A stretch of 64,000 nucleotides of DNA from Eukaryota sp. TZLM1-RC (taxonomy: Eukaryota; Protista; Metamonada: BaSk clade). The stretch spans positions 744,001-808,000 of the forward strand of contig JAUPSS010000003.1 in NCBI GenBank assembly GCA_040285825.1, written 5' to 3'. Both the position numbers and the translations under genes were made by a program. Below, one piece after another: positions 3,494-58,028 of the stretch. Position 1 is the first letter of the stretch. Each line of letters begins with the position of its first letter. Under the pieces are notes generated by a model. That model searched no databases. It saw nothing but the letters and a program-made list of their open reading frames with translations, and was not told the DNA's origin.

Positions 3494-4240
3494 ATAATTT
3501 TGGCCCTCATTGCAGATGTTTTTTACACGTGTAGTATCACCATTTCTTGTTTATGGAAGTGGATGAAGTTCAGGTGTTGCAACAACAGTGGAAGATCTAC
3601 AATCTGTTACACCGAAGAGAGACCTTTTTGTTGGAATCATTGGTACTCACAAGACCTGGGATTGATTCATCCGATGAGGTGTTTCTGGATTAATTGAGAT
3701 CCTCCACTTCGTTTTCGTCGTACGAGGAATTCAACTTATCCATAGCTGAGCTGAAGGTTGATGTCCGCAAGGGCGACGTCCGTGAACGTATGTTTTGTTA
3801 CCTGAGACGTTTTTTCAGGCGAAAAGAAGGGCTTTCGGACTGAAATTGCCTGACTAGCCTTCAGGATCAGATTCGGCAAAAGTATCCTTCCAGTAATATT
3901 GTAGAAATATTTGATTTCTCGAATTTGGGACGAGCTATTCCCCGTCTTTTCTACCTTGGTAAATACCACAGAGAATGAACTACTTGATTGCACGCGAGTA
4001 GTTTCTTGGAAAAGATTTTTAAAGACTGTTTCAGAAAATACTGACTCTGTGGGTCAAGCTGAAATGAAGTTTCGTTTATCCAATAGATCTCGCAATCTGA
4101 CTGACGGAACATGTTTTAAATGTCATCAGAAAGGTCATCTGGCTCATAATTGCTTCTCTAAAGTTAAGCCCGAAGTAAATCATTTCCATCACGTACCACA
4201 GTATATCACAAATTTCCTCTCTTCTTCATGCTAAAATTGC
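3494..4240 (+). pseudogene. gag fragment with CCHC zinc knuckle (family C, 3'-truncated)
   Basis: ORF 3911-4234 contains CFKCHQKGHLAHNC (CX2CX4HX4C). Confidence 0.65.
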
Positions 4241-4740
4241 TAAAATTGATACGAATGTACAGGCAGAATTGTTCAATAACGAAAAAACTTTGCTTCGTAG
4301 ATTTTCAAACATTACTGATAATTATCAACCACATTGTTTATCAGATCACAATTTAACCAACTTTGATTTACAAATTTTGAAAAAGCGTTTAAATTATTTT
4401 GATTTACCATTTCCCACTGTTCCAAATGATTCAACAATTAATGTACTCAGTCAACTTTTGCCAAAATGGAGAGAATTTGTCATCAGGGAAAATGGCTTTT
4501 ATCTTTAAGATACACTGGTATTTGTCAAAAAATTTATCAAAAACCAATATGATTATAGTTTAGGCAATTTGGCGTATGAAATGATTTATGAAAAGAAAAT
4601 GAAACTTCATCAACAATTTACCAATATTTTACCAATTGAGTGTTTAGCCACTGCTTTACCTAGACATAATTTAATTCATTATGGGCTTTCTTATTGTAGA
4701 CCATGTCTGGAACTCCTTTTTTGTTCCAAAAAGAAAAGTT
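4241..4740 (+). pseudogene. Family-B DNA polymerase-type 3'-5' exonuclease domain (Exo-Fanzor locus 1)
   Basis: NEKTLLRRF...QPHCLSDHNLTNFDLQILKKRL (ExoII), DTLVFVKK...YSLGNLAYEMIYEKKMKL, and LIHYGLSYC (ExoIII, Asp position replaced). One in-frame stop at 4506-4508. Confidence 0.7.
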
Positions 4741-10033: not shown

Positions 10034-10650
10034 CAATTTTTCCCTCCTGACGAGATTATCAACAAAAAGAGAAAAGAGGGTGCAAATCTTTGAAAAAGGA
10101 AAACTGATGAGCAAATGGGAGAATGGATTTCAGATCAACAAGTGTTTTTAATTTCACTTGTTATTGGTAAGTTTGATCACCATAATTTCTTTTTGGAGAG
10201 TAAATATTCACTTATATTGAGAATTAGTCCTCAAATCAGATTACCTAACATTGATATGGATATTCAGGCAGAAATTTTCTCTGCCGAAAAAACCTTGCTT
10301 CATAGGTTCCTGAACATAATTGGTACTCATCAACCTCATTGTTATCTTACTCACAATTTACTGCAGTTTGATTTGCAGGTTTTAAAAAATAGATTAAATT
10401 ATTTTGATTTACCATTTCCCACTGTTCGAGACGATACAGCAATTGATGTACTCAATCAACTTTGACCAAAATGGAGAGAAGTTGTTATCAGGGAAAATGG
10501 CTTTTTTCTTATTATGGTTTTTGCCAAAAAATTTATTAAAATACCCTACGGACATGGATTAGGCAACCTGGCATATAAAATGATAAATGAAAAGAAAATC
10601 AAACTTCATCAGGAATTTTCCCATATAAAGATCCTCAAATATTCCTAAAA
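10034..10650 (+). pseudogene. PolB-type 3'-5' exonuclease domain (Exo-Fanzor locus 2)
   Basis: FFPP...DQQVFLISL, AEKTLLHRF...QPHCYLTHNLLQFDLQVLKNRL (ExoII), GLGNLAYKMINEKKIKL. Nucleotide paralog of 4241-4740. Confidence 0.7.
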
Positions 10651-13379
10651 CTAGCAATTACAATTGCCCAATAGATCTCCAGTAGAGAGAAAAAACCTTA
10701 TCATATTTCTCCTGTTTCAAACATTAATTGATGATTTATCATCTACATAGAACTGAAAATGTCCAATACACAAGCCCAAATTACGAAATTCAAACCACCT
10801 GAGCAATTTGACTTTTGGTCTATGACTATCGATTTAAACCAACCAATGTTCAAACAAAAGATTTATAAATTCAACAACATTTTCCACACAGATGGATTTA
10901 ATATTGCAGTGGAATTTGGTGCTCGGATTTTGGAAGGTCAGAAATGTCAGCCACACAACAAGGCCAGTATTTCTGATTTATATATTGATGATGTTGATGT
11001 TGATACTTTTCAAGATAAACGAATAGTTGTATGTGATCATCGAAAACGTGATTTAATGTATTTTGGCAGTGGAAAAACGGATCAAGAATTAGCCATGGTG
11101 CCTGAAGATGAAACTGAGCAGCAAAGAAATAGTCGGGTGATGAATCAAGACAAGAAATTCAAATGGTTGAGAATGACTCAGATGACCTGGTCTTTGAAAA
11201 GTAGGATTAATGAAAAACAAAATCGATGGGCGACAAAGTAAACTGAGGTAGATTACGACAGGAACCAAATGATAGAGTCTAACGAAATGATAATTGAAGA
11301 TGCAAATACCGAATTATCCGCATTTGCTGCCAATTCTGCAACTTTTAGAGATTTTTCCAACTTTGTGGTTGGTAAACTTCGGCAAGTTGTTTTTGACAAT
11401 TGACTTTTACAGTCTTGACTTGTTGAGCAATCATAAAATGCAAGCTTTTCTTCACAAGTAAAAGTTTGAAAGTTGGTTGTTAAAAAGCCCTTTTTTATTC
11501 ATTTATTTTTATTTTATTCATTCAAGAAATATGAAAACATAAAATACACAATTAAAACTCCACATCCTCAAAACCTGTCTCCCCTACATCAAAACAATTA
11601 ATTGCTAAAGATTCAGAAAATTTCCCAAAGGAAGAGAGTGAATCAGAAATTAGTTTTACCATTCCCTTAAAAATAGAAAATACAATCCTGTTTTGCCAGT
11701 AAACACGATTGAAAATTCTTCCAGGTCTCTCCTTTACAACTACAACAAAATCCTCAAGGAAAGCCATAGCAGCCTTACCTAGAGATCCAAGCAAAAAAAC
11801 AAAGGGACATAAATTATATTGGGCATGAGAATTTTCATTAACTGAGGAAAAGGGTTTCGCATATTTAGCAATTTTATATTTTTCGCCTGCAAGAAGAGGA
11901 TTATTTACATCCGAGTTAATAAGATGTTCGTTAGAAGAATTACAAGGTCAATAGACATGGCGTCTAAAATAGTAAAACTACCATTTAAACCGGGAACAAC
12001 TAGATCACCTCTTTTCAGACCCATAGAAGCTCTGTTGTAACGCGTACTATCAATATTGGGGTCATCAAGAATTAATTTTGATAACAACGGCTCTAAAAAG
12101 GAATCTATTCGGTATGATTTGCACATAACATAAATTTGGTCCCTGACATTATTATGCACTTTGCTTCTAAATGTAATAAAATGTTTACAGTTCAAACGAT
12201 GAGTAAACAAAAGAGGTTTACCACATTTACAAGTTTAATGATTGGGCAAATTGTTTGGCCACAGAGAACAACGAAAACGCATGTTTAAAAGCCATTCATT
12301 GTTTTTTAACAAAAGTCCATAAACAGAGGGAATTTAAGTTACTAAAGCAGCAGCAGAACTATCACGAATGTCCTTTAAAAAATTACCAAAAGCGAGATTT
12401 TCAGTTTTGGCCAAGCCAAGTCTTACTTCATAATCCAAGCCTTCATATAATTCAACCAGATGGTGCTGAAGCTTTTTCAGGCAAAAACGTAAATTTGGAA
12501 GTGATCGGGTGGGAATTTCTTGAACATTTTGAGGAAAACACTGAATCCAGATATCACTAGGCAAATTAACTAATTCAATTTGAAGTTGAATCACATAAAA
12601 ATTTGATTCACCATGGATCAAATGAACATCATAAGGAAACCTTTGGAAAAATTCAAAAATAAAATTTTTTCCACCTCCTAAAAAAGCTGCTTTACATAAA
12701 ATCGAAGATTTAGTGAAACCAATTCCACCCAATTCAGCAGAACAAAAAACATGACTTCGAATTAAAGATTCATTTACCTCCAATAAAGAAGAAAAAAATT
12801 TGACCCGAAGTTTGTTGAAAGATCTACAAAAATCAAGAGATACTGAAGGAGGAGTTGACCTTGAAAATATGAGTGAATTTTTCAGAATAACAAATTTTTA
12901 AAATAAAAAATTTGATGTGTTTTTCAATATCACATTCAGCAATAAAACTAAACCTTGTTCAGAATTTTGGCAACCCAAAAGACACTTTAATATTAATGGG
13001 TGATTTTGGTAAAAAAGGTTCCAAGAATTTAAAACATCAGAGACCTACTCGACTCATTGGATGGATTCAATTTTTGAAAAGAAATGGATTTGAAATATTG
13101 ATCATTAGTGAAGCTTTCACTTCAGCAAATTGTCCTGTTTGTTTTGAAAAGGTTGATACGTTTTTGAGAGTAACAAATCCTAGACGCTATAGAAGAGAAA
13201 AGACTCCTGTTACTACATGTCATGATTTATTAGCTTGTAACAGTGAGAGTTGGAAACTCAGTAACAAAAGCTCAACAAAGCTTTTCAATAGAAATAAGCT
13301 GGCTTGTCTGAATATGTTTGCAATATTGTAAGCCAGAAAGAGTGGTAATGAAAGGCCTCAGTATCTGTGTAGTACATAG
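10651..13379 (+). pseudogene. Fanzor1 RNA-guided nuclease (locus 2), N-terminally deleted and interrupted by an RLE retrotransposon
   Basis: FNNIFHTDG, LYIDD, IVVCDHRKRDLMY (RuvC-I), ILMGDF, ISEAFTSANCPVC (RuvC-II plus zinc finger), LLAC...FNRNKLACLNM (RuvC-III, D to N), ERPQYL. Confidence 0.85.
11491..12952 (-). mobile_element. 5'-truncated RLE-type (CRE/SLACS-like) non-LTR retrotransposon inserted in Fanzor
   Basis: RSTPP, LGGIG...AAFLGG, HRLNCKHFITFRSKVHNNVRD, EP...RGDL...DAM (RLE domain), and an A-rich 3' tail at about 11491-11525. The flanks rejoin as Fanzor FESWLLKS|LVQNFGNPKD. Confidence 0.85.
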
Positions 13380-41279: not shown

Positions 41280-41900
41280 AATAACCAACCTTTTTTGCCT
41301 GATTGCTTTTCAATTCTAATATTCAAGTCACTCAAGAAGGTCTTATAGCTGAACCTGTGGAAGACTATGATGAGGAAGATGAAGATGATGATTCAGACCA
41401 ATGATCCTTCAATTCACTCCAGCCAAATATTGGCAGTGACCCAATAGTTACGATTTCATGTGGTGTTACCTCAACTCAGAAACACATAAATGAGTCTAAC
41501 GTTTATTATCATTTGTTTCATTGGAATGAAAATTCTTTTATTACATCAAGTTCAACAACAGAACACAGAACAGATGAATTGCAGATAATAATTTCGTTAT
41601 TCAATTGCTTATCATCAACTCAACCTGATGTTATTGTTGGATTCAATTCAACCTTATTTGATCTACCGTCAATATATGCACGGTTAGAAATATTAGGTTC
41701 AGGTGTTGCAAATTTCGAAACAAACAAATTGAAAGGGCATTATCTTACCCATTATGATAAGAAGTTTAATGGTCCAAATATGTTCGATCTTTTTACTGTT
41801 ATTCAGGATAAATTTCTAAAATCATAGGTGGGAACAATTTAAATAATTTTTGGGCAAAAAAATACAGTAATTCCAGCTGATAAACATAAGTTAACTGAAA
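41280..41900 (+). pseudogene. PolB-type 3'-5' exonuclease domain (Exo-Fanzor locus 3)
   Basis: SDPIVTISC, DELQIIISLF...PDVIVGFNSTLFDLPSIYARL (ExoII), FDLFTVIQ. Confidence 0.78.
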
Positions 41901-42119
41901 ACTTTTCTTATGATTCGGCCTCACGAATCTCCAAATGCGAATTTGAGGTTCCTTCCCCCAAAAAAATAGACCAATTCTTCCAAAACTCAATTAAATCACA
42001 ACATAGAGAACAACATAATCAATTCAATTCAAAAGAAGAAACCTGTTTGGTAAAAATTATTTCACAAAACAACAAAAGTCTAGGGATGTTTATTGAAGTG
42101 ACGACTCAATGGAAAAATT

Positions 42120-43272
42120 AGCATCTTTAATTCTAAAAGATTAGTTGCAGCAGATCCAAATGAATATGATATGATTCATGCTGTTTCAAAAAAATTAAAC
42201 CAAGCTGATTGCTACACAAAACTTTCAATTGATAAAGATGAAGTTGAGCAGAATGAGGAAACAAACCACAGAAAAAGTGCAAAAAAGAAGACATTCCTAA
42301 TATTGACTCCTTTTTTACTCAAGGTGAACGAAATTGTTCGCTAGGTTTTTTAAAAAATCGGAAAGATGCAAAGAAACGGCAAGATGAATACTTCTTCCAC
42401 GGCAATACGGAAAGTCATAGCGGGAAAATGAGGAAACAATCAAAATCAACCATTTTAGAGGAATTTTGTGAGTAATTTAATGCAAAATCAATGTTATAAT
42501 CAAAACTTGGAATTTTATAACCAAGAACAATATCGAAAACAAAGGTTTTCTCACCACATCCTCTTAACAAAAAGGTAACATGAAGCTCATCCGGAAAATT
42601 AACCAAAAATTTGTCAAACCTGGGGACTACATCTAGTGATCACTAGTGACTGGGACTAAAGAATCAGGTTTGGAAAGTAAACAAAAGTACCCATCTGAAG
42701 GTACAACACAATATAAGAAAAGTATTGACACAAACCAATTACCCTGTTTAGTTTATGAGGCATTTACTTCAAAAAGATGTCATAAATGTAGAAAATCAGA
42801 CGGGAGATTCATGTAAGAAAGAAGAATTGGAAGTTACATATAGATTAAAATAATGGAAAAAAGGCAAAAAAGAAAGCAAAAGTAAAAGAGAAATTAGAGG
42901 AAGCAATGAAATCAAGAGAAGGCTTAGTCATAGAAATGAGTAAGAATGAACCAAGACGTCAAGCAAAAGCATTAGAAAGTGTAACCAACAAGAGGATAAG
43001 AAAATGAATTTCAAAGGCTCTTGGAAAACGATGAATTGGGCAACTATAAAGTTCGTCAAGTAGTTCCATGGGGTCTGAGGCAGTGTAATCAATGCAAAAC
43101 GATGTGGAATCGAGATACTAATTATGCTCTAAATATTCTGATGTTGGCTGAAGACATTCTGGATGGAAGAGAGAGATCAGAGGTGTTGAGGAGACAACAG
43201 TCTCAAACAAATGTAATTGAACCCCCTGATGCAAGCCTGAAGAACCAAACCTCAATACATTATCACGAGTAG
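42120..43272 (+). pseudogene. Fanzor1 nuclease remnant (locus 3), heavily degenerate
   Basis: LVAADPNEYDM (RuvC-I), VITSDWD, YEAFTSKRCHKC (RuvC-II plus zinc finger), GLRQCNQCKTMWNRDTNYALNI (RuvC-III). Confidence 0.8.
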
Positions 43273-43320
43273 CGAAAGCGAAAGTATAGTTTTGAAGTAA
43301 CTATCAAACAGAGGGTATCA
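43220..43320 (+). ncRNA. Candidate Fanzor omegaRNA (locus 3)
   Basis: Enclosing stem ACCCCCTG/CAGAGGGT, GC-GAAA-GC tetraloop, and hairpin ATAGTT-N7-AACTAT at the Fanzor 3' end. Confidence 0.3.
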
Positions 43321-43865: not shown

Positions 43866-44765
43866 TCAAAGACCATAATCAAGACCACTAAAATCCATCT
43901 TTCTTGGTGCATCCAGGTCTCGGTATGTTAGCACCTCTTTCCTCGACCTCGGGTCTGGCTCATACCTACGAGGAGGGGTTCTGGGTGGAGAAGGAGTGGG
44001 ATCACGTGGACTTTGGGGCTTCTCTCTTGAAGGATCAGTGTAAAAGTGATTGAAAAAATCATCTTGAACATATTCTTCGATAGCTTTCTTTTCAACTTCA
44101 ACAAGTTCTTCATGCTTTGTTCTGAAATGTTTCTCCATGAATTGCATCCCCTTGAACAGTTTCCTACACTCAACCACGCCACATCTGACTTTGGTTGTTT
44201 CTGGTTGACCTTCCTCGATGGCTGGTTCCTTGACAATTGTAGACTTTTGGTCAACAATTTTCTGAGCTGCCACATCATCAACGAGCTTCCCTTCTTTTTC
44301 TATCGGATGGTATTTCTTTCTAAATTCTGGATTGTCTTTATGAAGGGTAAAATATTCTCTTGCCCAATGTTCGTCAAAGTTGGCTCGGTATTCTTCGTAT
44401 CGTTGCTGAAGAACACTAGCAGAAGCAGAAGGTTGGGTTCGACAGTATTGTTTAAAAGACATAGGACGGTCACGGTCTCGTTCAGGAGAGAATGAGCGTC
44501 GGAAAGAGCGGTCACGGTCATCATAACGCCGCCGCCTACGAGGTGGGGAAGAAGAAGAATGACGAGCGTGACGTCTCCGGTCTATTTTTTCAGGAGAATG
44601 AGAGTAGTAAGGTCTAGAATAGCGGTCGGGTGACCTGGGGAGTGGAGACGGAGTGCGATAAGGTGGAGTTTTGGGACGTGAAGTTCTGGGAGGAGAGGGA
44701 GGAATAACAACAGGAGCAGGAGGAGCCTGAGTCGAAGTAAGCGAAGGGGAAGACGACTCTGTCAT
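43866..44765 (-). CDS. SRRT: Compact SERRATE/ARS2-like protein
   Basis: RS/P-rich N-terminus, MSFKQY...YEEYR...YF..HK..PEFRKKYHP, C2H2 CGVVECRKLFKG..F..KH...KH, and terminal YRDLDAP. Confidence 0.85.
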   Translation of the reverse strand: MTESSSPSLTSTQAPPAPVVIPPSPPRTSRPKTPPYRTPSPLPRSPDRYSRPYYSHSPEKIDRRRHARHSSSSPPRRRRRYDDRDRSFRRSFSPERDRDRPMSFKQYCRTQPSASASVLQQRYEEYRANFDEHWAREYFTLHKDNPEFRKKYHPIEKEGKLVDDVAAQKIVDQKSTIVKEPAIEEGQPETTKVRCGVVECRKLFKGMQFMEKHFRTKHEELVEVEKKAIEEYVQDDFFNHFYTDPSREKPQSPRDPTPSPPRTPPRRYEPDPRSRKEVLTYRDLDAPRKMDFSGLDYGL

Positions 44766-44794
44766 TCTTATAGATATTGTCTATAACAATGCAA

Positions 44795-44887
44795 TAAGTG
44801 TCCTCTTTACACCAATGTAGAGGGACTGAGTTTTGAGAAGTGCAAGATTTTCTCCTTGAAACCTTTTTCATTTGAACCATCATCAAC
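44795..44887 (-). ncRNA. Candidate Fanzor omegaRNA (locus 4)
   Basis: Hairpin GTCCCTCTACATTGGTGTAAAGAGGAC (44826-44800) about 60 nt after the Fanzor stop. Confidence 0.3.
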
Positions 44888-45922
44888 CTAGGCTCTTTGT
44901 AGGTTTACTGGTCTATCTCCAGCTTTTACATGTGCTTCCATCACTTTAACATATTGAACGACTATTTCTATTTCTATTCCACAAACTTTTGCATGATTTA
45001 CACATCGTAAGCCCGTGACGAATAGACATCTCATGCCTCTTCCATCGCTATGGATTGCTGCACAATCGAAATGTTTCAACTGTTTTCTCCGCTTTCTCAC
45101 AATTGAAACAACAACTGTTTCGAAAGTCGTCAATTAAAAAGACCTTATAACCAGCCTTTAAATAAAATTCTCAACTCTTTTCCCTTGGTAGGTTCTTTGA
45201 ATTTCATGTGTTTTCGTTGTTCCCAGTCTCCAATTCCAATAACTACTTGGCTGGCATCACCATTTACTGATTTGAAGCACTGAATCATTTTTGCCTCAGA
45301 TCTTGTGCGAGTGATCTCAGCCCACCGTCTTAGTTTCCTGAATATTTTTTTGATGATAGATTTCACCAACAATACTATTCACAAAATTCTTTTGTTTATT
45401 ATATGCCGTAAATCTATCAAACCTGCAGCTTTTGGAATTGAATTGGGATAAAGTTGCTTCCCATTCTGCTACAGATTTAGTTTTTTGTTCATTCTTTCTC
45501 AAATTTAATGAGTAATCAATTTCGTGGGGAATATTGATTTCTTGAGGTACTTTTCCTCTTAATAAACTAATTGTTCTTTCAGTCATTTGATTAATTATAC
45601 TGCTGTTTAAATGCATCCTTTGTTGTTGCTCTTCATTTGGTTCATAATTGGATAGATCAATCACTCTACCAGTAGAGTTACTTATTGTGATCAGAGTGTC
45701 ATTCCGTTTGCTGTCTCTTATTCTTTTGAATTTGGAACTTTTCGACTCAAATTTTCGTTGATTTTGAGTGTACCTGAAATGAACATATTTATCTCTTTCA
45801 GGTTTTTTTGAATAAGTCATTCCAGTAGCTAAATTCTCAGAAAAATAGAGTAGATCAGATTTCCCTGGATCAGCAGCAGCAAGGGTCATATCTTGGAATT
45901 CAGAAGGATTGATGCTGGGATC

Positions 45923-46057
45923 TGATGCTTTATGCATATATGATAACAAAGAGTAAGGATAATTTATTAGAATTTCACCGGCCCTTATAAAGGCCATCAC
46001 TAGTGAACTATGTTATATAAATATAAATGTACTAGACTAATTGTCCACAGTACAACA
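45923..46057 (-). repeat. 3' LTR of Gypsy A2 (135 bp)
   Basis: TGTTGTA...AGCATCA; direct repeat of 52657-52792. Confidence 0.93.
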
Positions 46058-49000
46058 CTACCTTTTCCCTCTCTTAGGTCTCGAACGAGAGCTACGAGTA
46101 CTGACTGCAGGGGAATTAGTCTTAGATTTGGAATTAGAAGATGCCTTCCGTTTCCTGGTAGTGTGAGGACTAGTAGAGCGCAAATATGTTTGATATGCCT
46201 CAGTGCTTTTGACGTCAGCAACTGGGACAGACGAAGTCTCGCCGCCATACCAAACTGCAATACAATAAGGAACTTTATTATTGTTCGAATCTACGTAATC
46301 AAAGTGATCTATAATTTTAACGATTACAGATTCTTCCATATCGCCAGCAGCAATATTCTTATGCCAATCAAGATCATCTTTAGGGAAGTCTAAAAGGTAT
46401 AGTTGACAATGATTTATACTTGCCGTAGACATCGAACCAGTGACGAGATTCTTGAGTAATAAACTTTTATTGGATTTAACTTCTTCAACGAGAAAAGGCC
46501 CAGCGAAGCAACCATGGAGTTTACCATTAGTCTTTAATCGCAAAACTAAGTCACCTTTATTAAAAGGGTTCCTATGTTTGTTAACTTCAGGCAGTTGTTG
46601 AGCTTGCCTGAGCTCTGCCTCTTCTCTCTTCTTTGAAATCCTTTCAAGTTTTGCTTCAAGATCTTTAACAAAGGGAATATTAACATTAGCTGATTTTATT
46701 AGTTCAAACATATTACTAGGATCAGCTCTAGGGCTGTGGTCGCTACCAAACATTAAATTGTAGGGCGAATGACCAGTAACTCTACTAATAGTTGAATTGA
46801 TTTGAAGTTGTACAATTGGGATATATTCACTCCAATTGCTATAATCGCCAGAGTCCACCAAAATCTTTCTTAGACTTTGTGAAATGTCTCTGTGTCGTCT
46901 TTCTACTAATCCATTGCTTTGTGAAAAACTAGTTAGTGAACAACTTACTTCAATGTTTAATAAATCGCATAACCCTTTGAATATGGCATTTGCAAATTCA
47001 ATACCATTGTCACTATGAATCACCAGTGGGATACCAAAAATTGATACTACACTCCATAGGAGGTGATTGGTTGCCTCCACTGCATTCAATTCCTTTGCAG
47101 GGCAAATGATCGTATACCTAATAAACGAATCTACAAAAACTACTAAATATTTGAATCCATTATCATCTTGTTGTAATGGTCCAATAGTATCTGCGTTTAT
47201 TCGTGCAAAAGGTCGATCAGCCCAAAGAGAGCCAGATGATTCAATGACATTTTTAGGCACATGTGCCGTCTTTTGACATGCTGGACATCTCTTAATGTGA
47301 TTAATCATGTCTTTGCGCATGTCGGGCCAAAAGTAATCACTATTAAGTAATTTCTTTACGCTAGTCGTCACACTAGGATGGCCAACATTTGCATGTCCAT
47401 GAATGATAGTTAAAGTCTGCTTCTTTAAACTATCTGGGATAACAATCTTCCCACGATTGTTGGTATACAATTGAATATCTGAATTATAATTGTAATCTTT
47501 ATAATAATTAGGATTTGAATCAACATCTATAAGTTGTTCTTGCCTAATCTTTGAGATCCAAGTGTCAAATAAATCAAATTTAGTATCCTCAACTGCTTCT
47601 TTCAGTGCAGATAAGTTATTGATCGTTGGTAGCTCAATTGTGGACGGTTGAGTAATATCATCCCTTAACAAATTAACTCTAGTTAATAAATTTAAATAGG
47701 GTAATTGTTCTTCAACTCTGTGAGGTGCCAAGTTTCTCACTTGTTGGACTCGAGGAGTTTTGGGTTTGGTATCAACCAATCTAGACAAAATGTCTGCCCA
47801 ACAATTCTCCTCGCCTGCAGTGTGGACTACATCAAAATTGAATTCTGACAATGTTGGTAGCCACCTCTTCACAATTCTGTTCTTTTTAGGAGCTGATATG
47901 AGGTATGCTAAATTTCTATGATCAGTGAAAATAGTTAATTTCCTCGAAATTAAATAATTTTCTAAACTACTGTCAGTGAGAATTAGTAAAATTGCATACA
48001 ACTCTTTCTGAAGTACAGACCAATTCTTTTGTGAAGTTGATAATAATCTGCTAAAGAAGGCAATAGGTACAACCTTTCTCTTAATTAGCGGTGTCGTAGG
48101 ATCTTTAGGTGGGTTAGCTTCTTGCCATATTACTCCACCTACAGCCACATCGGACGCGTCAGCTCTTATTAAAATATGCTTGTCTTCTGAGGGCAATTCA
48201 AGAGGGATATTTGCTTTGATAAGATTTACAATCTTACCAAAAGCCTCGTCATGATGAGGAGTCCACTTGATTTTTGACGGTTTGTTTCTAGTTAATTTGT
48301 TGATTGGTTCTATCAAGTCAGACAAATTTGGCAACAAGTCACGTATATAATTGATTGAACCTATAAAACTCCTAACTTCAGGTAATGTCCTGGGTTTGGG
48401 TAGGTTGATCAGTCCCTCGATCCTAGATTCATCCATATAACGGGTTTTGTTTACAAAAATACTACCTAGAATTTTTATTTCATGTTTGCAAGTGGTAAAG
48501 CTACACTTGGGTAGGCCCAGGTTAACTCTAAAACGTTTGGCGCGTTCTAGGACCGTACCTACTCTGGATAGAAATTCATCCAGGGTCGAAGCTACTATTA
48601 TTATATCATCGATATAAATAAATACGCCCTCAGAATCAAATATTTCCATCATCATGTTTTGGAAGACTGCAGGAACGTTCTTCAAACCAAAACAAGCCCT
48701 TTTAAAACTGATCGACATCCCAGGAATTGATACGGTAGTTTTATCAATATCCTCTTCTGCAATTTTGAGCTGCCAAAATGCCTTAGGTAAATCTAGAGCT
48801 GCTATATAATTAGCTTTACTTAGAAACTCTAAAATGTCGCTAATCCTGGGCAAATTTGCCTCTACAGGTTTAGTTAAATCATTTACTCCACCAATACCAC
48901 TAAAATCGCCAGTTAATCGTGGTTTCCTGTGATCAGGGTAAATCACAAGACAGATGGGACTACTGAATTGAGACTTTGCGGGCACAGCAAATCCATTACG

Positions 49001-49231
49001 GATCAATTCGTTAAAAATTTCCTCGGCTACCCGTTGTTTTTCTGGGTTTAATCTTCGAGGTTTCCTTTTGACGACCTTACTTTCGTCATAAAATGGAATG
49101 GTCATCGGCTGACAATCAAATCCATCCAGGTGAGGTAGCCCACTAAATACATTTCTATATTTTTCGAGTAGCACGACTAGGCGTTCCTCGTTTCCTAATG
49201 TCATCCAGGCATATTTCACAGCCCAACTCAT
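46058..49231 (-). CDS. Gypsy A2 pol (RT, RNase H, integrase, chromodomain-like)
   Basis: YIDD, ADASD, HHCC, D,D35E; C-terminal VIVKIIDH...AVWYGGETSSVP. Confidence 0.93.
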   Translation of the reverse strand: MSWAVKYAWMTLGNEERLVVLLEKYRNVFSGLPHLDGFDCQPMTIPFYDESKVVKRKPRRLNPEKQRVAEEIFNELIRNGFAVPAKSQFSSPICLVIYPDHRKPRLTGDFSGIGGVNDLTKPVEANLPRISDILEFLSKANYIAALDLPKAFWQLKIAEEDIDKTTVSIPGMSISFKRACFGLKNVPAVFQNMMMEIFDSEGVFIYIDDIIIVASTLDEFLSRVGTVLERAKRFRVNLGLPKCSFTTCKHEIKILGSIFVNKTRYMDESRIEGLINLPKPRTLPEVRSFIGSINYIRDLLPNLSDLIEPINKLTRNKPSKIKWTPHHDEAFGKIVNLIKANIPLELPSEDKHILIRADASDVAVGGVIWQEANPPKDPTTPLIKRKVVPIAFFSRLLSTSQKNWSVLQKELYAILLILTDSSLENYLISRKLTIFTDHRNLAYLISAPKKNRIVKRWLPTLSEFNFDVVHTAGEENCWADILSRLVDTKPKTPRVQQVRNLAPHRVEEQLPYLNLLTRVNLLRDDITQPSTIELPTINNLSALKEAVEDTKFDLFDTWISKIRQEQLIDVDSNPNYYKDYNYNSDIQLYTNNRGKIVIPDSLKKQTLTIIHGHANVGHPSVTTSVKKLLNSDYFWPDMRKDMINHIKRCPACQKTAHVPKNVIESSGSLWADRPFARINADTIGPLQQDDNGFKYLVVFVDSFIRYTIICPAKELNAVEATNHLLWSVVSIFGIPLVIHSDNGIEFANAIFKGLCDLLNIEVSCSLTSFSQSNGLVERRHRDISQSLRKILVDSGDYSNWSEYIPIVQLQINSTISRVTGHSPYNLMFGSDHSPRADPSNMFELIKSANVNIPFVKDLEAKLERISKKREEAELRQAQQLPEVNKHRNPFNKGDLVLRLKTNGKLHGCFAGPFLVEEVKSNKSLLLKNLVTGSMSTASINHCQLYLLDFPKDDLDWHKNIAAGDMEESVIVKIIDHFDYVDSNNNKVPYCIAVWYGGETSSVPVADVKSTEAYQTYLRSTSPHTTRKRKASSNSKSKTNSPAVSTRSSRSRPKRGKR

Positions 49232-49979
49232 CTAACTCATGTCTAAATGTGGAATGCCCAAAATCATTACCTAAGTCTGATTTATTACTCAATTGTTCTA
49301 TGAATCTAATTGGTTGACAAATTCTATTATCAAACTCACATTCAGCATTTAAGATGGTGCGATGTTCGCGATCCAAATTAATATTAAAACCGTGCTCCGT
49401 GCGTAGCCCCAAGGTTTGTAATAAGTCTCTTCCGATCAAAAAATTATTGGTACCAGGAATGATCTGGAATTCGATCCTTAAAAACACTTGAGTGGCCAAG
49501 CTACCCACATTTAGAGCAAGAACACCACATGCACATCCCAGGGTCGTGGAGCGAATACCATTTGCCGATAAGTATTCGACAGTTTTATTGTCATTAACTG
49601 TCATATTACATTTAGAGGCTAAATCCCTTGATAATACTGAAAATGCAGCTCCAATATCAATTTCGCCTTGTACTTCCACGTTATTTATAGTGCAGGTTAA
49701 CCAAAGTTCCCCGTTAGAAATTTCTTGGTCCTCTGCTACCCTGGATAGTCTAACACTGTGGATAAAACCCACAGGATTGGATGACTCTCTAAATCTTTTT
49801 AATGGATTTAGGTGATTATAATTCGAATCTGCTTTGCTCATTTTATAAATGGATTTGATTGAATTATTTGTAAGGTTATTGTTAAAAGATGTATAATCAT
49901 CTGATTTATTACTACTACTTTTACGTTTTCTATCACGTTTTTCGCCTCCTTGACGCTTTTTTGAACCAGGTTTTCCCAC
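49155..49979 (-). CDS. Gypsy A2 protease region
   Basis: IDIGAAFSVL and LIGRDLL; frameshift to pol near 49190. Confidence 0.85.
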   Translation of the reverse strand: MGKPGSKKRQGGEKRDRKRKSSSNKSDDYTSFNNNLTNNSIKSIYKMSKADSNYNHLNPLKRFRESSNPVGFIHSVRLSRVAEDQEISNGELWLTCTINNVEVQGEIDIGAAFSVLSRDLASKCNMTVNDNKTVEYLSANGIRSTTLGCACGVLALNVGSLATQVFLRIEFQIIPGTNNFLIGRDLLQTLGLRTEHGFNINLDREHRTILNAECEFDNRICQPIRFIEQLSNKSDLGNDFGHSTFRHELDELGCEICLDDIRKRGTPSRATRKI

Positions 49980-50021
49980 TAATTTAAAACATTTCTCTTC
50001 AGGATGTTTATTGGTTTTGCA

Positions 50022-52650
50022 TTAGTTACACCATTGCTCTGAAGGCATGGGTCGACTGCTTACTCTACGGTTCTTAAAAGGACCTTTTGACTGGCTTCGT
50101 CCTTTTTGCGCAGGAGCGTGAGCACCAAAAGCTGTTCTTATCAAATTCATGTCTTTGATCGAGGATTCAAGGCTATTGACCTTGTTAACAAATGCGTTAC
50201 CTAAATCGTAAATCGCATCGCCCAGTTTCTCGTTACTCGAATCAAACTTGCCAATCCAAATGATATATGTGTCCATCAATTGATTGTTTGTTTTGTCGTT
50301 AATAGTTTCGAGAAATCTCTTTGCTGGGTAGACGACAGACGGATTACCATCCGTTCCGGGCATAATTGTAGAGCGTCGAATTATATATATGATCTGCTCT
50401 ATGAAGGCTGTCCATGAAGATTCAGCAGTCATTCTGCGACTGATCTCAGGTGGTCTTACAGACCTTAAAGCCTTCTCAACATTGGTAGGGTATTTGTACT
50501 GGGTGCTGAGTAGCAAATATTCCCAGATTTCGGCGTCAGATGGGTTGTTGCCTAACACGTTTGTTCGGCCTCCATAAAAACTCTGCCATTCTGCGATGAC
50601 CTTACCCTCGATCATAAATCTCAAATACAAAGGGTCCACTTCGAAGAACATAGATCTAACGAAGTCGTACTGATGAACAGGTTGACCGTATTTGGTGATC
50701 GGCGTAAATGCTCTGGTGGGTCCATCGCGATCCCTAACTGTTTTAGCCCAATTGCCAAAGTTAAGAACGAAGTCGAAGATCTTCTTGGCGTCAAACGCTT
50801 CATTTAACTTAACTAGGCATCTGAGTTTGTCGTCTATTCTTTTCCTCAATTTCTCCTCGTCTGTTACAGGAGTTCTATAAAGACCGAGGGTGTCAACGAG
50901 AGAATCTCTAGGAGCATTCGTTCCTAGGGGTTGCGTGGGTGTAGATGATTTTATAACAGATGCTTGTGTAGGAGTTGCTTCACATGAAGCTCTCCTAGAT
51001 GCCAGAGGCCCTACAGAAGGTGTACTAAGTAGGTTCATATTCCTCTCTTCTGAAGGCAATGTTTCGCCCAACTTGATGATAAATCGTGTCTTAGGAGGTT
51101 CCTCCTGCACTGGTACGGTCTGGGCTGGTGGCCTTAAATCCACCCAATCTGGTGCATCTTTAGATCCTCTAGGGACCCCTGCTAGTTTATGATCATATGG
51201 AAGGCAACTGCTCTTTATTAAGACATTCTCAAAAACATTTTGGTCGGGCCAGCTATCAACCCATGCCTTAAGTTTTGCCATCCATGCATCAGGGTATACT
51301 AGTTTTAACTTGTTGGGGCCAACACGTTGCTCTTTCAATTCAATTACCCTTGTGCCTATTTCTCTAATATAGGACTCTTTGGTATGAAATTGAAGGGTGT
51401 CACCTCGAGATTCATCGAATCTGCCCCCAAGCATAATAAAAATGTCCGCAATGGAATCTTTTGGGTGTACGTTCTCCACTAGGAAATGCCTTACGACGCC
51501 TCTAAGGTTTCTACCTTGTTGATTATGAGGGTACATTTTAGCTATCCAAAATAGTTTGTCGTAAGCCTCTTGATTTCCACTGAAATATATTTTGTGGTCA
51601 TCAATCGCATCCCTATGCCATTTGGCAGGCCTGGGAGTAGCAGCTTGATACTTTGAACGAGGAGCACTAAAATAGCAACCCTCGACTGCACTCATCCCAC
51701 ACGAGACTACCGAATCGGTAAGATCATCCAATCTCTTTAAAAGATTTGGACTCTGATCATAACTCTCGTAGACGTCATCGTCAAGTGTTTTGCCGTGGGC
51801 TTCCCCAAAGAGAAAGGGCCAACGTTTCGCTAAATAGTTACGTCTGACCTTCTCACATTCGGCTGGATCTACTTCTCCTGAGAGGCGTTCTGCCTCATTC
51901 TCAGCCATTTTTAGTAATTCATCATCACTCCAATCTAATTACATCATCAGGAGGATTGGCGATGAGATCCAATAGGAAATCTCTAGTTACAACCTTAACT
52001 GCCTTTGCTAGTTTCCTTCGGTAAAGACCCTGAGAAGTCCTTTCCGTAGATGGGAAACTAGGAGTTGGATTAGGAGGATTGGGTGTATGAGGTGGTTCAT
52101 CATCGCTCTCATCCCCTCTCCTGCTGTAGTTCTGATTAAGAGATCCTCTGGAATCACTTTGAGGTTCCTCACTTGAGCTGATGTCAGAAGTAGGTGAGGA
52201 GGGAGTTTTACGTGAGGAGCTAGTCGTAAACTGTTGCTCGCCTTCGCCTCCTTCACCTTCTGTACAAGCGTCAGATTTATTACTTACAACAAACGCTTTG
52301 AATCTCCGTTGCTCGCTCGGAGTGAGAAAACTCTTCCTACAAGGAAGGAGCTCCGAGGAGTTATTGGGATATGTGTACAGTTCTGTCACATCCACAACGT
52401 GGTTATCTCTCTCCTTATTAGGGAGGTGACTTCCTTTCTGGGAGGAAGGGCTCTCCTCAGTGTGAAGTTCACTCTCCTTATTGAGGAGGTGGCTTTCTTT
52501 CTGAGAGGCAAGGCTCTTCTCAGCGGAAAGCTCACTCTCCGTAGGTGGAGGATTACTCACCGTGGGTGGTGTATTGTTCTCCTTCAAAGAAGGGACATTA
52601 CTCTCCCTTAGAGAGGAAGGAGGGTTATCATTGTGGCTTTTCAGGCCATT
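50022..52650 (-). pseudogene. Gypsy A2 gag (long; frameshift near 51935, premature stop at 50022)
   Basis: ORFs 51925-52683 and 50022-51908 join through a frameshift (DWSDDELLK-MAE). The stop replaces the CSLCK seen in copy A1. Confidence 0.78.
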
Positions 52651-52656
52651 AATTAA

Positions 52657-52792
52657 TGATGCTTTATCCATATATGATAACAAAGAATAAGGAATAATTT
52701 ATTAGAATTTCACCAGCCCTTATAAAGGCCATCACTAGTGAACTATGTTATATAAATATAAATGTACTAGACTAATTGTCCACAGTACAACA
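52657..52792 (-). repeat. 5' LTR of Gypsy A2 (136 bp)
   Basis: Followed on the minus strand by TTAATTAATGGCC. Confidence 0.93.
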
Positions 52793-53771
52793 GATCATCA
52801 ATATATTTTTCTTTATCTTTTAATTCTTTTGCAGTTACTTTGTACCTTTTCAAGTCCATTCTAGATTGAATGAAACTGACTGCGATTCCATCAGTCTCGA
52901 TACTAGACATGATGTACTTTGAACTTTCTGAATAAAGTTTAGTGTTTTTAATCCTATCCATTTTCAAAAAGGTATTCCATAAAACCAAATCAGCAGCTTG
53001 ATTATTGCATTGGTAAGACGACCTTTGACGAAGAATGTCCTTGAATTCGACAAAGAACAAGTCCAATAAACTTGGCTTGTCAATTCTGATATACGAGGGA
53101 ATACAAGAATTCTTCAAAGGGAGAGCATGAAAGATATTGCTCTCCTCATCTTCTAAATAATTATTATTATAAAACATTGCCCTCAAACACAACTTTGATT
53201 TTGATGAAAATCAAATTTTGAATACTTTTCCCTTTTGGAATTACTGGGAAGTAAAAGAGGGATGCGGTCATTAGTGAAAAGCGAAGTAATTGATGAGACT
53301 TTTTTTCTCATTGTAGAAGTTTCGCCAGCAATATCTCTACATCCTCCAAGAAGGAGAGATTTAACTTTGCTGATGAATGAAGAGAAGTTTTTCTTATCTT
53401 GCTTTTTCAGGACATTGTTGTTTCTATCAACATCTCAGTGGCAGACAAGGAGAATTTTGCAAAGCTGTTTTTGTCTTTGCGTTTAGGGAACTTGCCTCCT
53501 CACTTTGGGACGTGACCACAAGAAAAGTGTCACGAAATAATTGGGTTTCAATTTCTGGTAAAAAATCGTTTGGGTTTATGTCAAAAAGATGCAAATAATA
53601 ACCACAAATGAATTCTAAACCAACAATAGAAATTTCCGGACACCTAATTATTGCCTCATCGATCACGTCAAACATTTTCGGATCTCTGATGACATTTTTT
53701 AGACTGTCTTTACAACCATCATAAGATTTATATTTAACAGTTTCCATGAATTGGTCATTGTTAAAGAAATT

Positions 53772-55460
53772 TCATAAAAAATTAAATAATTTCATTGTTA
53801 AATCTGTATCCCTCAGACAATGAACTGCAACTGCAGTTCTTCTTTGGAATAATGAAAAATCTGAGAAGGGGTCATCTTCTTCAACCTTCCAATACTCTGC
53901 CATATACTGAGGATCAAGATCAATTTTACTTTCCCCTAATAAAATTTTAGAAACTGTGTCTAGTTTGCGTGGTTGACAATAATTTGTGTAAATACTACAA
54001 GTATCAACAACAAATCGGCCAGCAATTAAGGGGTTCAAGTGTTTGTGGTTCAATTCTATTAAATTTGAGTTATAGTATTGAACCCATTCACTAGCATCGA
54101 TTTCACCCTTAAGAAATTCCTCATTTTCAGAACGTTTCATAATATTTGGGATGTCAAATTTGAAAATATTGAAACCACATATTATAAGAGGATTATAAGC
54201 TTCTGATAATTTAAATGAACTTAGCAATTCTTTTTCAGAGTAATGATGATATAAAGTGATATTTTCATCATCAACTTTGCAATAATGTTCATTTCTGCTT
54301 GTTGACTTTTCTACAAGATCACAAAAACAAAGATTTAATTCAATCTGTACTCGGGTAAAAATATGAGAAACAGAATTTGCAACAATCTTTCTTGTCACAG
54401 TAAGAAATTGAATTTTCTCTTGAAATGACAATTGTTTAGACCTCATAACTGTGCTTTTTTACCCAACATCACAGTTTCAATGTGTTGTCGCTGCAAGAGT
54501 GTTGTTACGCTTTCCCATATTTTAAACTGTAAGTATTTTATAACTTATCGCTCAATTGTTCATGACTCAGTTCGTGATCAATTATATGCCATGTGCAAAA
54601 GTTTCAATATAGAGGCATTTATTGAGCCACTAGTACGTAAGCTGTCTTCAGATCAAACTGATGATTCTTTTGGTAAAAGAAGGGCAGATTTAGTAGCTCC
54701 AGGGATCGATGGTGTTCTCAATGTTGTAGATGTTGTCTCCGTTGATGTTTGCAAAAATTCTGCTGCTCGTTTAGTGTATTTCGCTGATTCGCCGTTATCT
54801 TACGCCGAAAAAAAGAAGATAAAAAAATATGAAGAACCTTTGGCACAGTTAGGTAGAGTGGAACATGTGAAATATCAGTTTGTGCCGTTTGCAATTTCTC
54901 TTTTTGGCAATATTGGACCTTCAGGCTTGCACTTTTTGGAAAATTTTAAAAAAGTGTTACTGAATAGGTCTGGTAAAACAATGAACTCCACTTTCTGGTT
55001 AAATAGAATTGTTTTTTGCATTTTCAAGTCTATTCCTACAATGATTTCAAAGGCACTTTTAGCTATCGGTGTAGAATATGAACGTAATGCTGTGAGTAGG
55101 TTCAGTAATAGTGACGCTTGTTTGGAGGATATTGAATTCTAGATGGTTATTTTTATCTCAATAAATATTCCAGTTTTTTTTTAAAAAAAAGTTTCAATGT
55201 CAAAATGTAAAATTCTTAGAATAAATGGTGTTTGAACAGTAAAATTAATGCTTTCATGAATTGTTGTGTCGAGTCAAAGCATTTTCATTGAAAAGTGTTA
55301 TTACACGTTTCAAAGGTGTACTCAATGCATCAACTTGCCCATTTCTGATTGTCTTTTGTAGACAGGAGGAATATTTTGTCTCAAATAATTTTCTTTTATT
55401 GTCAACACAACTATAAAAACATCTTCTAAAGTTAATGAAATGTTCACAATATAACAAATA
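53772..55460 (-). pseudogene. PolB-type N-terminal plus 3'-5' exonuclease domain (Exo-Fanzor locus 4), split by an RLE insertion
   Basis: PFILRILHFDIET (ExoI, at about 55191-55230), SEKELLSSF...PLIICGFNIFKFDIPNIMKR (ExoII), GRFVVD, KLDTVSKILLGESKIDL, HCLRDTDLT (ExoIII). No polymerase motifs follow. Confidence 0.88.
54438..55190 (+). mobile_element. 5'-truncated RLE-type non-LTR retrotransposon
   Basis: CRC...HILNC...RSIVHDSVRD, EP...RADL...VDV, KK.KKY. AATAAA then a T10A8 tail; GTTT duplicated at 54434-54437 and 55191-55194. Confidence 0.88.
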
Positions 55461-55489
55461 TATAATTGTAGATTATGACTGAATTTAAA

Positions 55490-55650
55490 TGAAATATTAG
55501 GTCAATATTCAGGTCATTTTAAGGAACAAAGTTTCTTCTTCAAAGTTCAAGAATCAATGATGAGAGGGCCATGAACTTGCGGAATGGTTGTTACTAATGC
55601 AGAAGACATACTTAATCTGTATTCAATGTTGCTAGTTTTAGATCTACAAT
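55490..55650 (-). mobile_element. Old RLE non-LTR fragment
   Basis: SSALVTTIPQVHGPLIIDS matches AALVTTNPQVYGTL of the 16770-18380 copy. Confidence 0.5.
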
Positions 55651-57869: not shown

Positions 57870-58028
57870 CAGTGATTATGTTGGGTATAGAACAATATAT
57901 CTATATTGTTTCTAAATACCATTTTTGGAAGAAAAACCGGTATGAGTCTCAAGGCATATCCTTTTCAGTAAAAGATGTACATGTGCCTTATTATTAATGA
58001 ACAACAACTTCTATTTATCTATACAAGA

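Follow-up and report, generated by a model that had tools for sequence, protein, structure and literature searches.

A decayed protease-exonuclease-Fanzor1 unit in the genome of Skoliomonas litria

Does the genome of the free-living metamonad Skoliomonas litria TZLM1-RC encode a polymerase-type exonuclease fused to an RNA-guided nuclease, or has a transposon simply landed in a polymerase gene? The question was raised by a stretch of 64,000 nucleotides from assembly GCA_040285825.1 (hereafter, the window), on whose minus strand an earlier note had recognised a 3'-5' exonuclease of the family B DNA polymerase (PolB) type followed by a Fanzor1 nuclease. Fanzors are eukaryotic cousins of CRISPR-Cas12 and are under development as compact genome editors. 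From the comparison of the window with sibling copies elsewhere in the genome, we have concluded that the protease-exonuclease-Fanzor1 architecture is real and ancestrally fused, and that it is seen here as a dead copy. The role of the exonuclease is one that we infer, and it is weighed below against its alternatives.

The fusion and its ancestral reading frame

In the window, the exonuclease and Fanzor open reading frames (ORFs) are separated by a TGA codon (53772-53774, minus strand), which lies inside a 12-nt in-frame insertion present in the window copy only. We have reached sibling copies (family A) through annotated protein fragments, at L001 (contig 2), L002 (contig 4) and L005 to L009. 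An ORF of 262 amino acids in L002 (L002:11762-12550) passes from the exonuclease directly into the Fanzor (...KLFNFFNNDQFMETVK...), and the annotated protein P0002, from L001, likewise spans the junction. This supported the fusion that the earlier note had considered probable. Loci unrelated to one another, spread over three or more chromosome-scale contigs, have the identical in-frame junction, and at least 17 annotated family-A fragments are spread across the genome. The opposite case, that of a full-length PolB gene hit by a Fanzor transposon, had been put forward in the same note; it is ruled out by this shared, seamless junction and by the absence of a polymerase domain from every locus.

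The best-preserved sibling, L002, carries three stops and two insertions, of 167 nt and 1 nt. Its protein P0057 (491 amino acids) begins with MSDAPPGP and is unbroken through an N-terminal domain, a Ulp1-like protease and the ExoI motif, while an ORF of 287 amino acids contains RuvC-II, the zinc ribbon and RuvC-III, all intact. Both L001 and L002 keep the DEDDy residues of the exonuclease (ExoI D and E, ExoII D, ExoIII Y and D) and the D-E-D triad of the RuvC domain. The ancestral order reads N-terminal domain (~200 amino acids), Ulp1-like protease, PolB exonuclease and Fanzor1, with the full-length siblings beginning ~460 codons upstream of ExoI. The unit as first delimited was consequently too short, since the siblings add the N-terminal domain and the protease in the same ORF.

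The stops and frameshifts are copy-specific, with none common between copies. We have searched by dynamic programming for a stop-free path in which switching between aligned copies was allowed. With the window and L001 copies, such a path extended over 995 codons, and with all three copies over 1,392 codons, the latter with six switches and running from the element ATG to the shared stop, whereas the reverse-complement control needed 31 stops. The mosaic ORFs were built solely for locating lesions and computing dN/dS. Because the lesions are copy-specific and a stop-free path leads to the shared stop, the common ancestor must have encoded one polyprotein. Judging from these alignments, the unit is ~4.7 kb long and its ancestor was a single polyprotein of about 1,390-1,400 amino acids, in which the exonuclease-Fanzor fusion is ancestral and real and does not derive from a polymerase gene hit by a transposon. 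Family A starts with MSDAPPGP, an in-frame stop being located 21 nt upstream, and the 2A "StopGo" motif NPGP was found in no frame of the window. Separately, an annotated gene of 651 amino acids with a TNB domain runs off locus L006 (L006:1-702, minus strand); its 5' region is 82% identical to the family-A leader and start, and the gene may be a longer open copy.

The exonuclease ORF of the window (53772-54446) matched Pfam PF03104 (E 6.7e-8), the profile proposed as a check in the earlier note, and a hidden Markov model (HMM) built from 28 genuine PolBs (E 3.6e-30). A phmmer search with this ORF against 1.84 billion representative proteins returned real B-family polymerases as the nearest relatives, at 30-39% identity; inteins occur in many of these polymerases, and some are annotated as archaeal-type. 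With the query and one sibling set aside, 36 of the 38 matches carried a polymerase domain, the other two being short fragments, and the search yielded no exonuclease-Fanzor protein outside the S. litria genome. Both in the window and in the seven sibling loci, the PolB HMM was matched over its exonuclease region alone, with no counterpart of palm, fingers or thumb; PF00136 was not found by Pfam, nor were the motifs DxxSLYPS and YGDTDS. The claimed lack of a polymerase palm thus held across the whole window. On these profile comparisons, the element is not a polymerase and has the proofreading module alone.

The dN/dS of the exonuclease, for the window against each sibling, was 0.51-0.59 (upper 95% limits of 0.75 and 0.88), and that of the Fanzor was 0.33-0.42 for the window against the siblings and 0.29 for L001 against L002, values that overstate the true ratio because part of the divergence is neutral decay after insertion. 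The exonuclease therefore looks constrained, although less than the Fanzor.

Against an HMM derived from 104 metagenomic relatives, the Fanzor pieces of the window gave five collinear matches (E from 9.6e-9 to 7.3e-28). Single short pieces matched nothing in Pfam or PDB, and for this reason the Fanzor identity rests on the better-preserved siblings and on home-made HMMs. The sibling piece L002:13520-14383, which has 90% DNA identity to the window copy, matched PDB entries 9CF0 (E 3.2e-22) and 8GKH (E 1.1e-18) as well as PF07282 (TNB), with 30.1 bits for a cut-off of 26.3 (E 5.3e-7). The preceding L002:12553-13131 matched SpuFz1 (8GKH) collinearly (E 0.0046), indicating that the Fanzor starts directly after ExoIII, without a linker.

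As for the parts upstream of the exonuclease, the Ulp1-like (clan CE) protease of the siblings carries the motifs GQHW, FD(N/S)L and QSNLYDCG, and the window copy, which is truncated, lacks this domain. Support from Pfam was weak (18.0 bits to PF02902, under the cut-off of 20.7), and support from the ESM Atlas was good, with a features value of 0.95, 30 of 30 matches to PF02902 and a structure TM of 0.67. No recognisable relatives were found for the N-terminal 200 amino acids.

The window copy, its insertions and other remnants

Every motif reported by the earlier note was re-located in its place, and its reading of the minus strand as exonuclease followed by Fanzor1, once the Gypsy and restriction-like endonuclease (RLE)-type insertions are removed, was borne out. 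Homology with the siblings begins with the N-terminal region of the exonuclease and ExoI (55191-55451, minus strand, as are all parts of this copy), which marks a 5' truncation; counted along the ancestral ORF, the copy starts at about codon 380. ExoI (LRILHFDIET) lies at 55219-55190. The remainder of the PolB-type exonuclease domain (53775-54472), which was assigned with PF03104, the PolB HMM and the phmmer matches to real PolBs, contains ExoII (GFNIFKFD, 54176-54153) and ExoIII (HCLRDTDL, 53822-53799). Past the TGA codon come the frameshifted N-terminal part of Fanzor1 (WED/REC region, 52793-53771, with Fanzor HMM matches at 53210-52770) and, beyond the Gypsy insertion, its equally frameshifted C-terminal half (44810-45922), which shows collinear matches to the same HMM. 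The latter half comprises RuvC-I (AAADPGK, 45880-45860), RuvC-II (LIDDFRNS, 45137-45114), both cysteine pairs of the zinc ribbon (CCFNC at 45113-45099 and MCKSCKS at 45005-44985) and RuvC-III (NRNRN, 44978-44964).

This Fanzor1 had been called complete: all of its regions are indeed present, but they are not intact, owing to frameshifts, stops and the substitutions in RuvC-II and RuvC-III. Comparison with the siblings disclosed at least nine frameshifting indels and five in-frame stops in the window copy, together with the catalytic substitutions Y to H in ExoIII, E to D in RuvC-II and D to N in RuvC-III, so that of the D-E-D triad the RuvC-I D alone is kept. Nor does the copy end at 44888, as had been proposed. 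The natural stop codon of the polyprotein, common to all copies, is at 44807-44809, and the actual end is at 44766. With such lesions, the window copy reads as a dead, 5'-truncated relic and is no working gene.

The insertion inside the Fanzor (45923-52792, minus strand) is a Ty3/Gypsy retrotransposon with 135-nt long terminal repeats (LTRs) at 45923-46057 and 52657-52792 and a GATC target duplication; protease, reverse transcriptase, RNase H and integrase follow in the order expected of this group. Its excision in silico restored ...KEKYIDD directly followed by PSINPSEF..., identical to the reading of two uninterrupted sibling copies. ExoI is interrupted by a 5'-truncated RLE-type non-LTR retroelement on the plus strand (54482-55190), which has a 3' A-run and a target duplication, CATTGAAAC, at 54473-54481 and 55191-55199. 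A second RLE-like fragment (55440-55613) abuts the truncated 5' end of the window copy, near 55451. With L001:10680-14213 and L002:7450-9976 included, the family-A copies have received at least four separate RLE-type insertions, two of them nested in L001, and family-A units seem to attract this type of retroelement.

Two further exonuclease-Fanzor remnants were detected with the HMMs on the plus strand of the window. The first (family B, 41405-43303) has its exonuclease at 41405-41824 (PF03104, E 1.9e-7), RuvC-II near 42760 and RuvC-III at 43000-43269. The other (10094-13367) has its exonuclease at 10094-10462 and Fanzor pieces at 10735-11238 and 12891-13328. A solo exonuclease remnant (4179-4505, plus strand) belongs to the same subfamily as the 10094 piece, and these two flank a Gypsy element. 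In all three Fanzor remnants of the window, which represent three divergent subfamilies, the exonuclease stands just upstream on the same strand, and the ExoII region of the divergent families still matches the PolB profile. A different Fanzor at L001:4083-5996 (minus strand; ORFs of 299 and 318 amino acids; PF07282, E 4e-6), which precedes an IFT46 gene of the same strand by ~220 nt, is without a detectable exonuclease; the domain is therefore not universal among the Fanzor lineages of this genome.

Outside the genome, the closest Fanzor relatives (45-57% identity) are proteins 200-500 amino acids long, none of which has a recorded exonuclease family. One of these, P0101, is on a giant-virus-like contig and another, P0105, is beside a DDE_3 transposase. 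A Fanzor-like protein of 472 amino acids (DUF8286 and TNB domains) at L003:6001-7419 is 49% identical to the family-A C-terminal piece. It is encoded on a 172-kb metagenomic contig with genes for TFIIB, ribonucleotide reductase and a glycosyltransferase, which probably comes from a giant virus. When the metagenome contigs of JGI and IMG/VR were searched for close relatives of the junction peptide, none was returned. Full-text literature searches, with subscription-only papers outside their scope, returned engineering or unrelated work and no exonuclease-Fanzor fusion.

The S. litria genome consists of 55% repeats, and the paper that describes it mentions neither Fanzor nor TnpB (PMC11316075). 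The host genes of the window encode a Ski2-type helicase, a DEAD-box helicase, an Ars2-like protein, Vps55, KIN17 and an amylase, and three Gypsy elements and several Fanzor remnants are interspersed among them.

Right ends on host start codons

We have aligned nine right ends of the unit: those of the window (44763-44806), L001 (15937-15980), L002 (14383-14426), L005 (10800-10906), L007 (7685-7728), L008 (7490-7533) and L009 (7490-7532), and two in L006 (9090-9133 and 3545-3755). All nine finish with ...ATCTGTTTCA, or a variant of its last bases, and then ATG, with unrelated sequence beyond. At every site this ATG opens, in frame, the coding sequence of a same-strand host gene, a different one each time; the docked genes include those for an Ars2-like protein, Elongin A, an HSP70-like protein, an acyltransferase, a ubiquitin hydrolase and a GHMP kinase. 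The AATG is invariant and the five bases before it vary. In the window, the host gene is the Ars2-like one (43866-44765, minus strand; Pfam SERRATE_Ars2_N and ARS2 in its ORF), with its ATG (44763-44765) flush with the right end of the element. This docking on a host start codon had escaped the earlier note.

Between the natural stop and the host ATG there is a tail of 41 nt (44766-44806, minus strand) that includes a small hairpin, ATTGTTATAGACAAT. This tail is kept in nine copies and is presumed to form the terminal part of the omegaRNA scaffold. Although seven of these nine are truncated on the 5' side, all retain the right end. The left end lies ~290 nt upstream of the element ATG (leader), and one ORF fills the ~4.7 kb. 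A left end 24 nt before the ATG was considered and rejected, since in L002 an RLE insertion has its edge at this point and the copies are again homologous farther upstream. The ends of the two full-length copies (left ends at L001:7950 and L002:7160), and of these only, suggest a terminal inverted match of 7 bp, CATTGAA/TTCAATG; if it is genuine, the right-end ATG would belong to the element. The unit encodes no transposase, in agreement with the earlier reading, and the sole integrase is that of the inserted Gypsy element.

There are two candidate explanations for this docking, namely an integration tied to gene starts or survival only where the tail restores a promoter and start codon to the host gene. 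As a consequence of the docking on a host ATG, the guide of an omegaRNA, if there is one, would correspond to the initial codons of the docked gene. The search for an orthologue of the HSP70-like host gene, from which an element-free site could be read, returned only the gene itself. A palindrome, ACAATATAGATATATTGT, was also noticed in the window at 57870-57910 (minus strand), just upstream of the ATG of a WD-repeat gene (57869). It resembles the tail hairpin, and the two could be a shared promoter-like motif.

Possible roles of the exonuclease and comparison with known systems

Taken as a whole, the data are probably best explained by a decayed, transposase-free protease-exonuclease-Fanzor1 unit in which the exonuclease worked on the 3' ends of the Fanzor break. 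The Fanzor would carry an omegaRNA that takes its guide from the adjoining host sequence, in this copy the opening codons of a host gene, and would cut an element-free copy of the docking site. The built-in exonuclease would act on the 3' DNA ends and digest the short segment that separates the cut from the insertion point and that would have no counterpart in the element-bearing template. Trimming would also prevent clean re-ligation, and the element would then be restored by copying during repair. The cuts of TnpB-family enzymes fall some 15-20 nt from the target-adjacent motif, and hence the break ends would carry short 3' stretches mismatching the element-bearing template. Work in yeast has established that the 3'-5' proofreading activity of Pol delta removes short 3' tails during gene conversion; by analogy, the PolB-type exonuclease of the element could do the same and block re-ligation.

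Several observations weigh against this explanation. Such RuvC nucleases leave 5' overhangs, and the end-processing logic is not self-evident, because a 3'-5' exonuclease makes no 3' tails for recombination. The exonuclease dN/dS between L001 and L002, the closest pair, was 0.83 (0.46-1.53), which is compatible with neutral evolution. The consensus fold of eight right ends was weak (-19.6 kcal/mol) and lacked covariation, the copies being too alike, so that the omegaRNA structure is without statistical support, and the presence of a protease in the same ORF leaves room for the parts acting separately. Moreover, no intact copy was found among the copies obtained. The absence of an intact annotated copy says little, since repeats were masked by the genome authors before gene calling (PMC11316075).

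In a bolder proposal, the unit would be a self-sufficient, transposase-free homing element that docks at host start codons, cuts any element-free copy there with its Fanzor, trims the 3' ends with its exonuclease and spreads in a gene-drive-like manner. We regard this as doubtful. If true, it would represent a natural gene-drive-like design aimed at gene starts.

That the polyprotein is split by the Ulp1-like protease, with exonuclease and Fanzor acting as separate proteins and possibly at different steps, we consider unlikely. A clan-CE protease domain is indeed part of the same ORF, and proteases inside mobile-element polyproteins usually serve processing. Nevertheless, Gly-Gly motifs occur only at codon 202 (LSGG followed by G, before the protease), which is the only one near a domain border, and at codon 1367, near the C-terminus, with none at the protease-exonuclease or exonuclease-Fanzor borders, and the N-terminal region of the Fanzor follows ExoIII without a linker. 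As no Gly-Gly lies between them, the exonuclease and the Fanzor would be expected to stay joined after any Ulp1-type self-processing.

The exonuclease might instead trim RNA, at the 3' end of the omegaRNA or of the guide. The DEDD superfamily includes RNases, and the end of a guide would need to be defined, given that transcription runs into the host gene. This role is quite improbable, however, for a domain of PolB proofreading type that has only DNA polymerases as its nearest relatives. We hold it equally improbable that the domain is a catalytically idle extension, serving DNA binding, dimerisation or localisation or merely carried along. Its dN/dS (0.5-0.8) is above that of the Fanzor and compatible with neutrality in the closest pair, and a tree of the exonuclease core, computed from only 84 columns, does not unite the domains of the subfamilies and does not discriminate between a single acquisition and several. 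Conversely, all five DEDDy residues are kept in L001 and L002, and the divergent families still have an ExoII region that is recognised by the PolB profile. A chance juxtaposition, in which an ordinary Fanzor transposon hit a viral, Polinton-type or plasmid PolB fragment, has in its favour that PolB genes occur in mobile elements and that the window is full of nested insertions, but it is exceedingly improbable in view of the recurrence of one in-frame junction across unrelated loci of three or more chromosome-scale contigs, the lack of a polymerase domain at any locus, the order common to three divergent subfamilies and the copy-specific lesions.

Exonucleases are already attached to such nucleases by engineers in order to alter how breaks are repaired. 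If the exonuclease did work on the ends of the Fanzor break, a natural Fanzor with its own polymerase-type exonuclease and protease would show that end processing belongs to the natural repertoire of at least one RNA-guided mobile element, and would offer a ready-made architecture for testing. Start-codon docking in a unit without a transposase would also make experimentally approachable how Fanzor elements spread and what their nuclease is for.

Among known systems, the closest is Fanzor1 itself, as represented by SpuFz1 of Spizellomyces punctatus (8GKH) and the Parasitella parasitica protein (9CF0). The likeness extends over RuvC-II, the zinc ribbon and RuvC-III (E from 1e-18 to 3e-22) and includes the D-E-D triad, the CxxC...CxxC ribbon, the collinear N-terminal region and the nature of a eukaryotic mobile-element gene. 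The unit described here differs by ~700 additional N-terminal residues in the same ORF (N-terminal domain, Ulp1-like protease and PolB exonuclease), by lacking a transposase and long terminal repeats, and by its right end on host start codons. With family B DNA polymerases (archaeal-type PolB, Pol delta), it shares ExoI, ExoII and ExoIII at 30-39% identity, but it has no palm, fingers or thumb. The absence of the polymerase part and of an integrase of its own separates it from Polinton/Maverick, casposon and linear-plasmid PolB elements. The combination of TnpA and subterminal hairpins that defines TnpB transposons of the IS200/IS605 or IS607 type was not found in it. Ulp1-bearing transposon proteins (such as hAT or MULE proteins that carry ULP domains) share the clan-CE protease, whose partner is there a transposase and here an exonuclease-Fanzor.

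Accessory 3'-5' exonucleases are also known from Cas2-DnaQ fusions. DnaQ-like domains occur in the polyproteins of LTR retrotransposons (PMC6338049). In both of these cases, the exonuclease is an accessory as in the present unit, but it is of the DnaQ type and has other partners. To our knowledge, no DnaQ-type accessory is fused to TnpB, Fanzor or a Cas12-type effector. Engineered exonuclease-nuclease fusions have been treated as a strategy for editing efficiency (PMC13370227, PMC11471210). These constructs (TREX2-Cas9, and exonuclease-Cas12 or TnpB-type editors) likewise couple an RNA-guided nuclease to an end-processing exonuclease, and the S. litria unit differs from such man-made fusions in being natural, in the polymerase type of its exonuclease and in its protease-bearing polyprotein.

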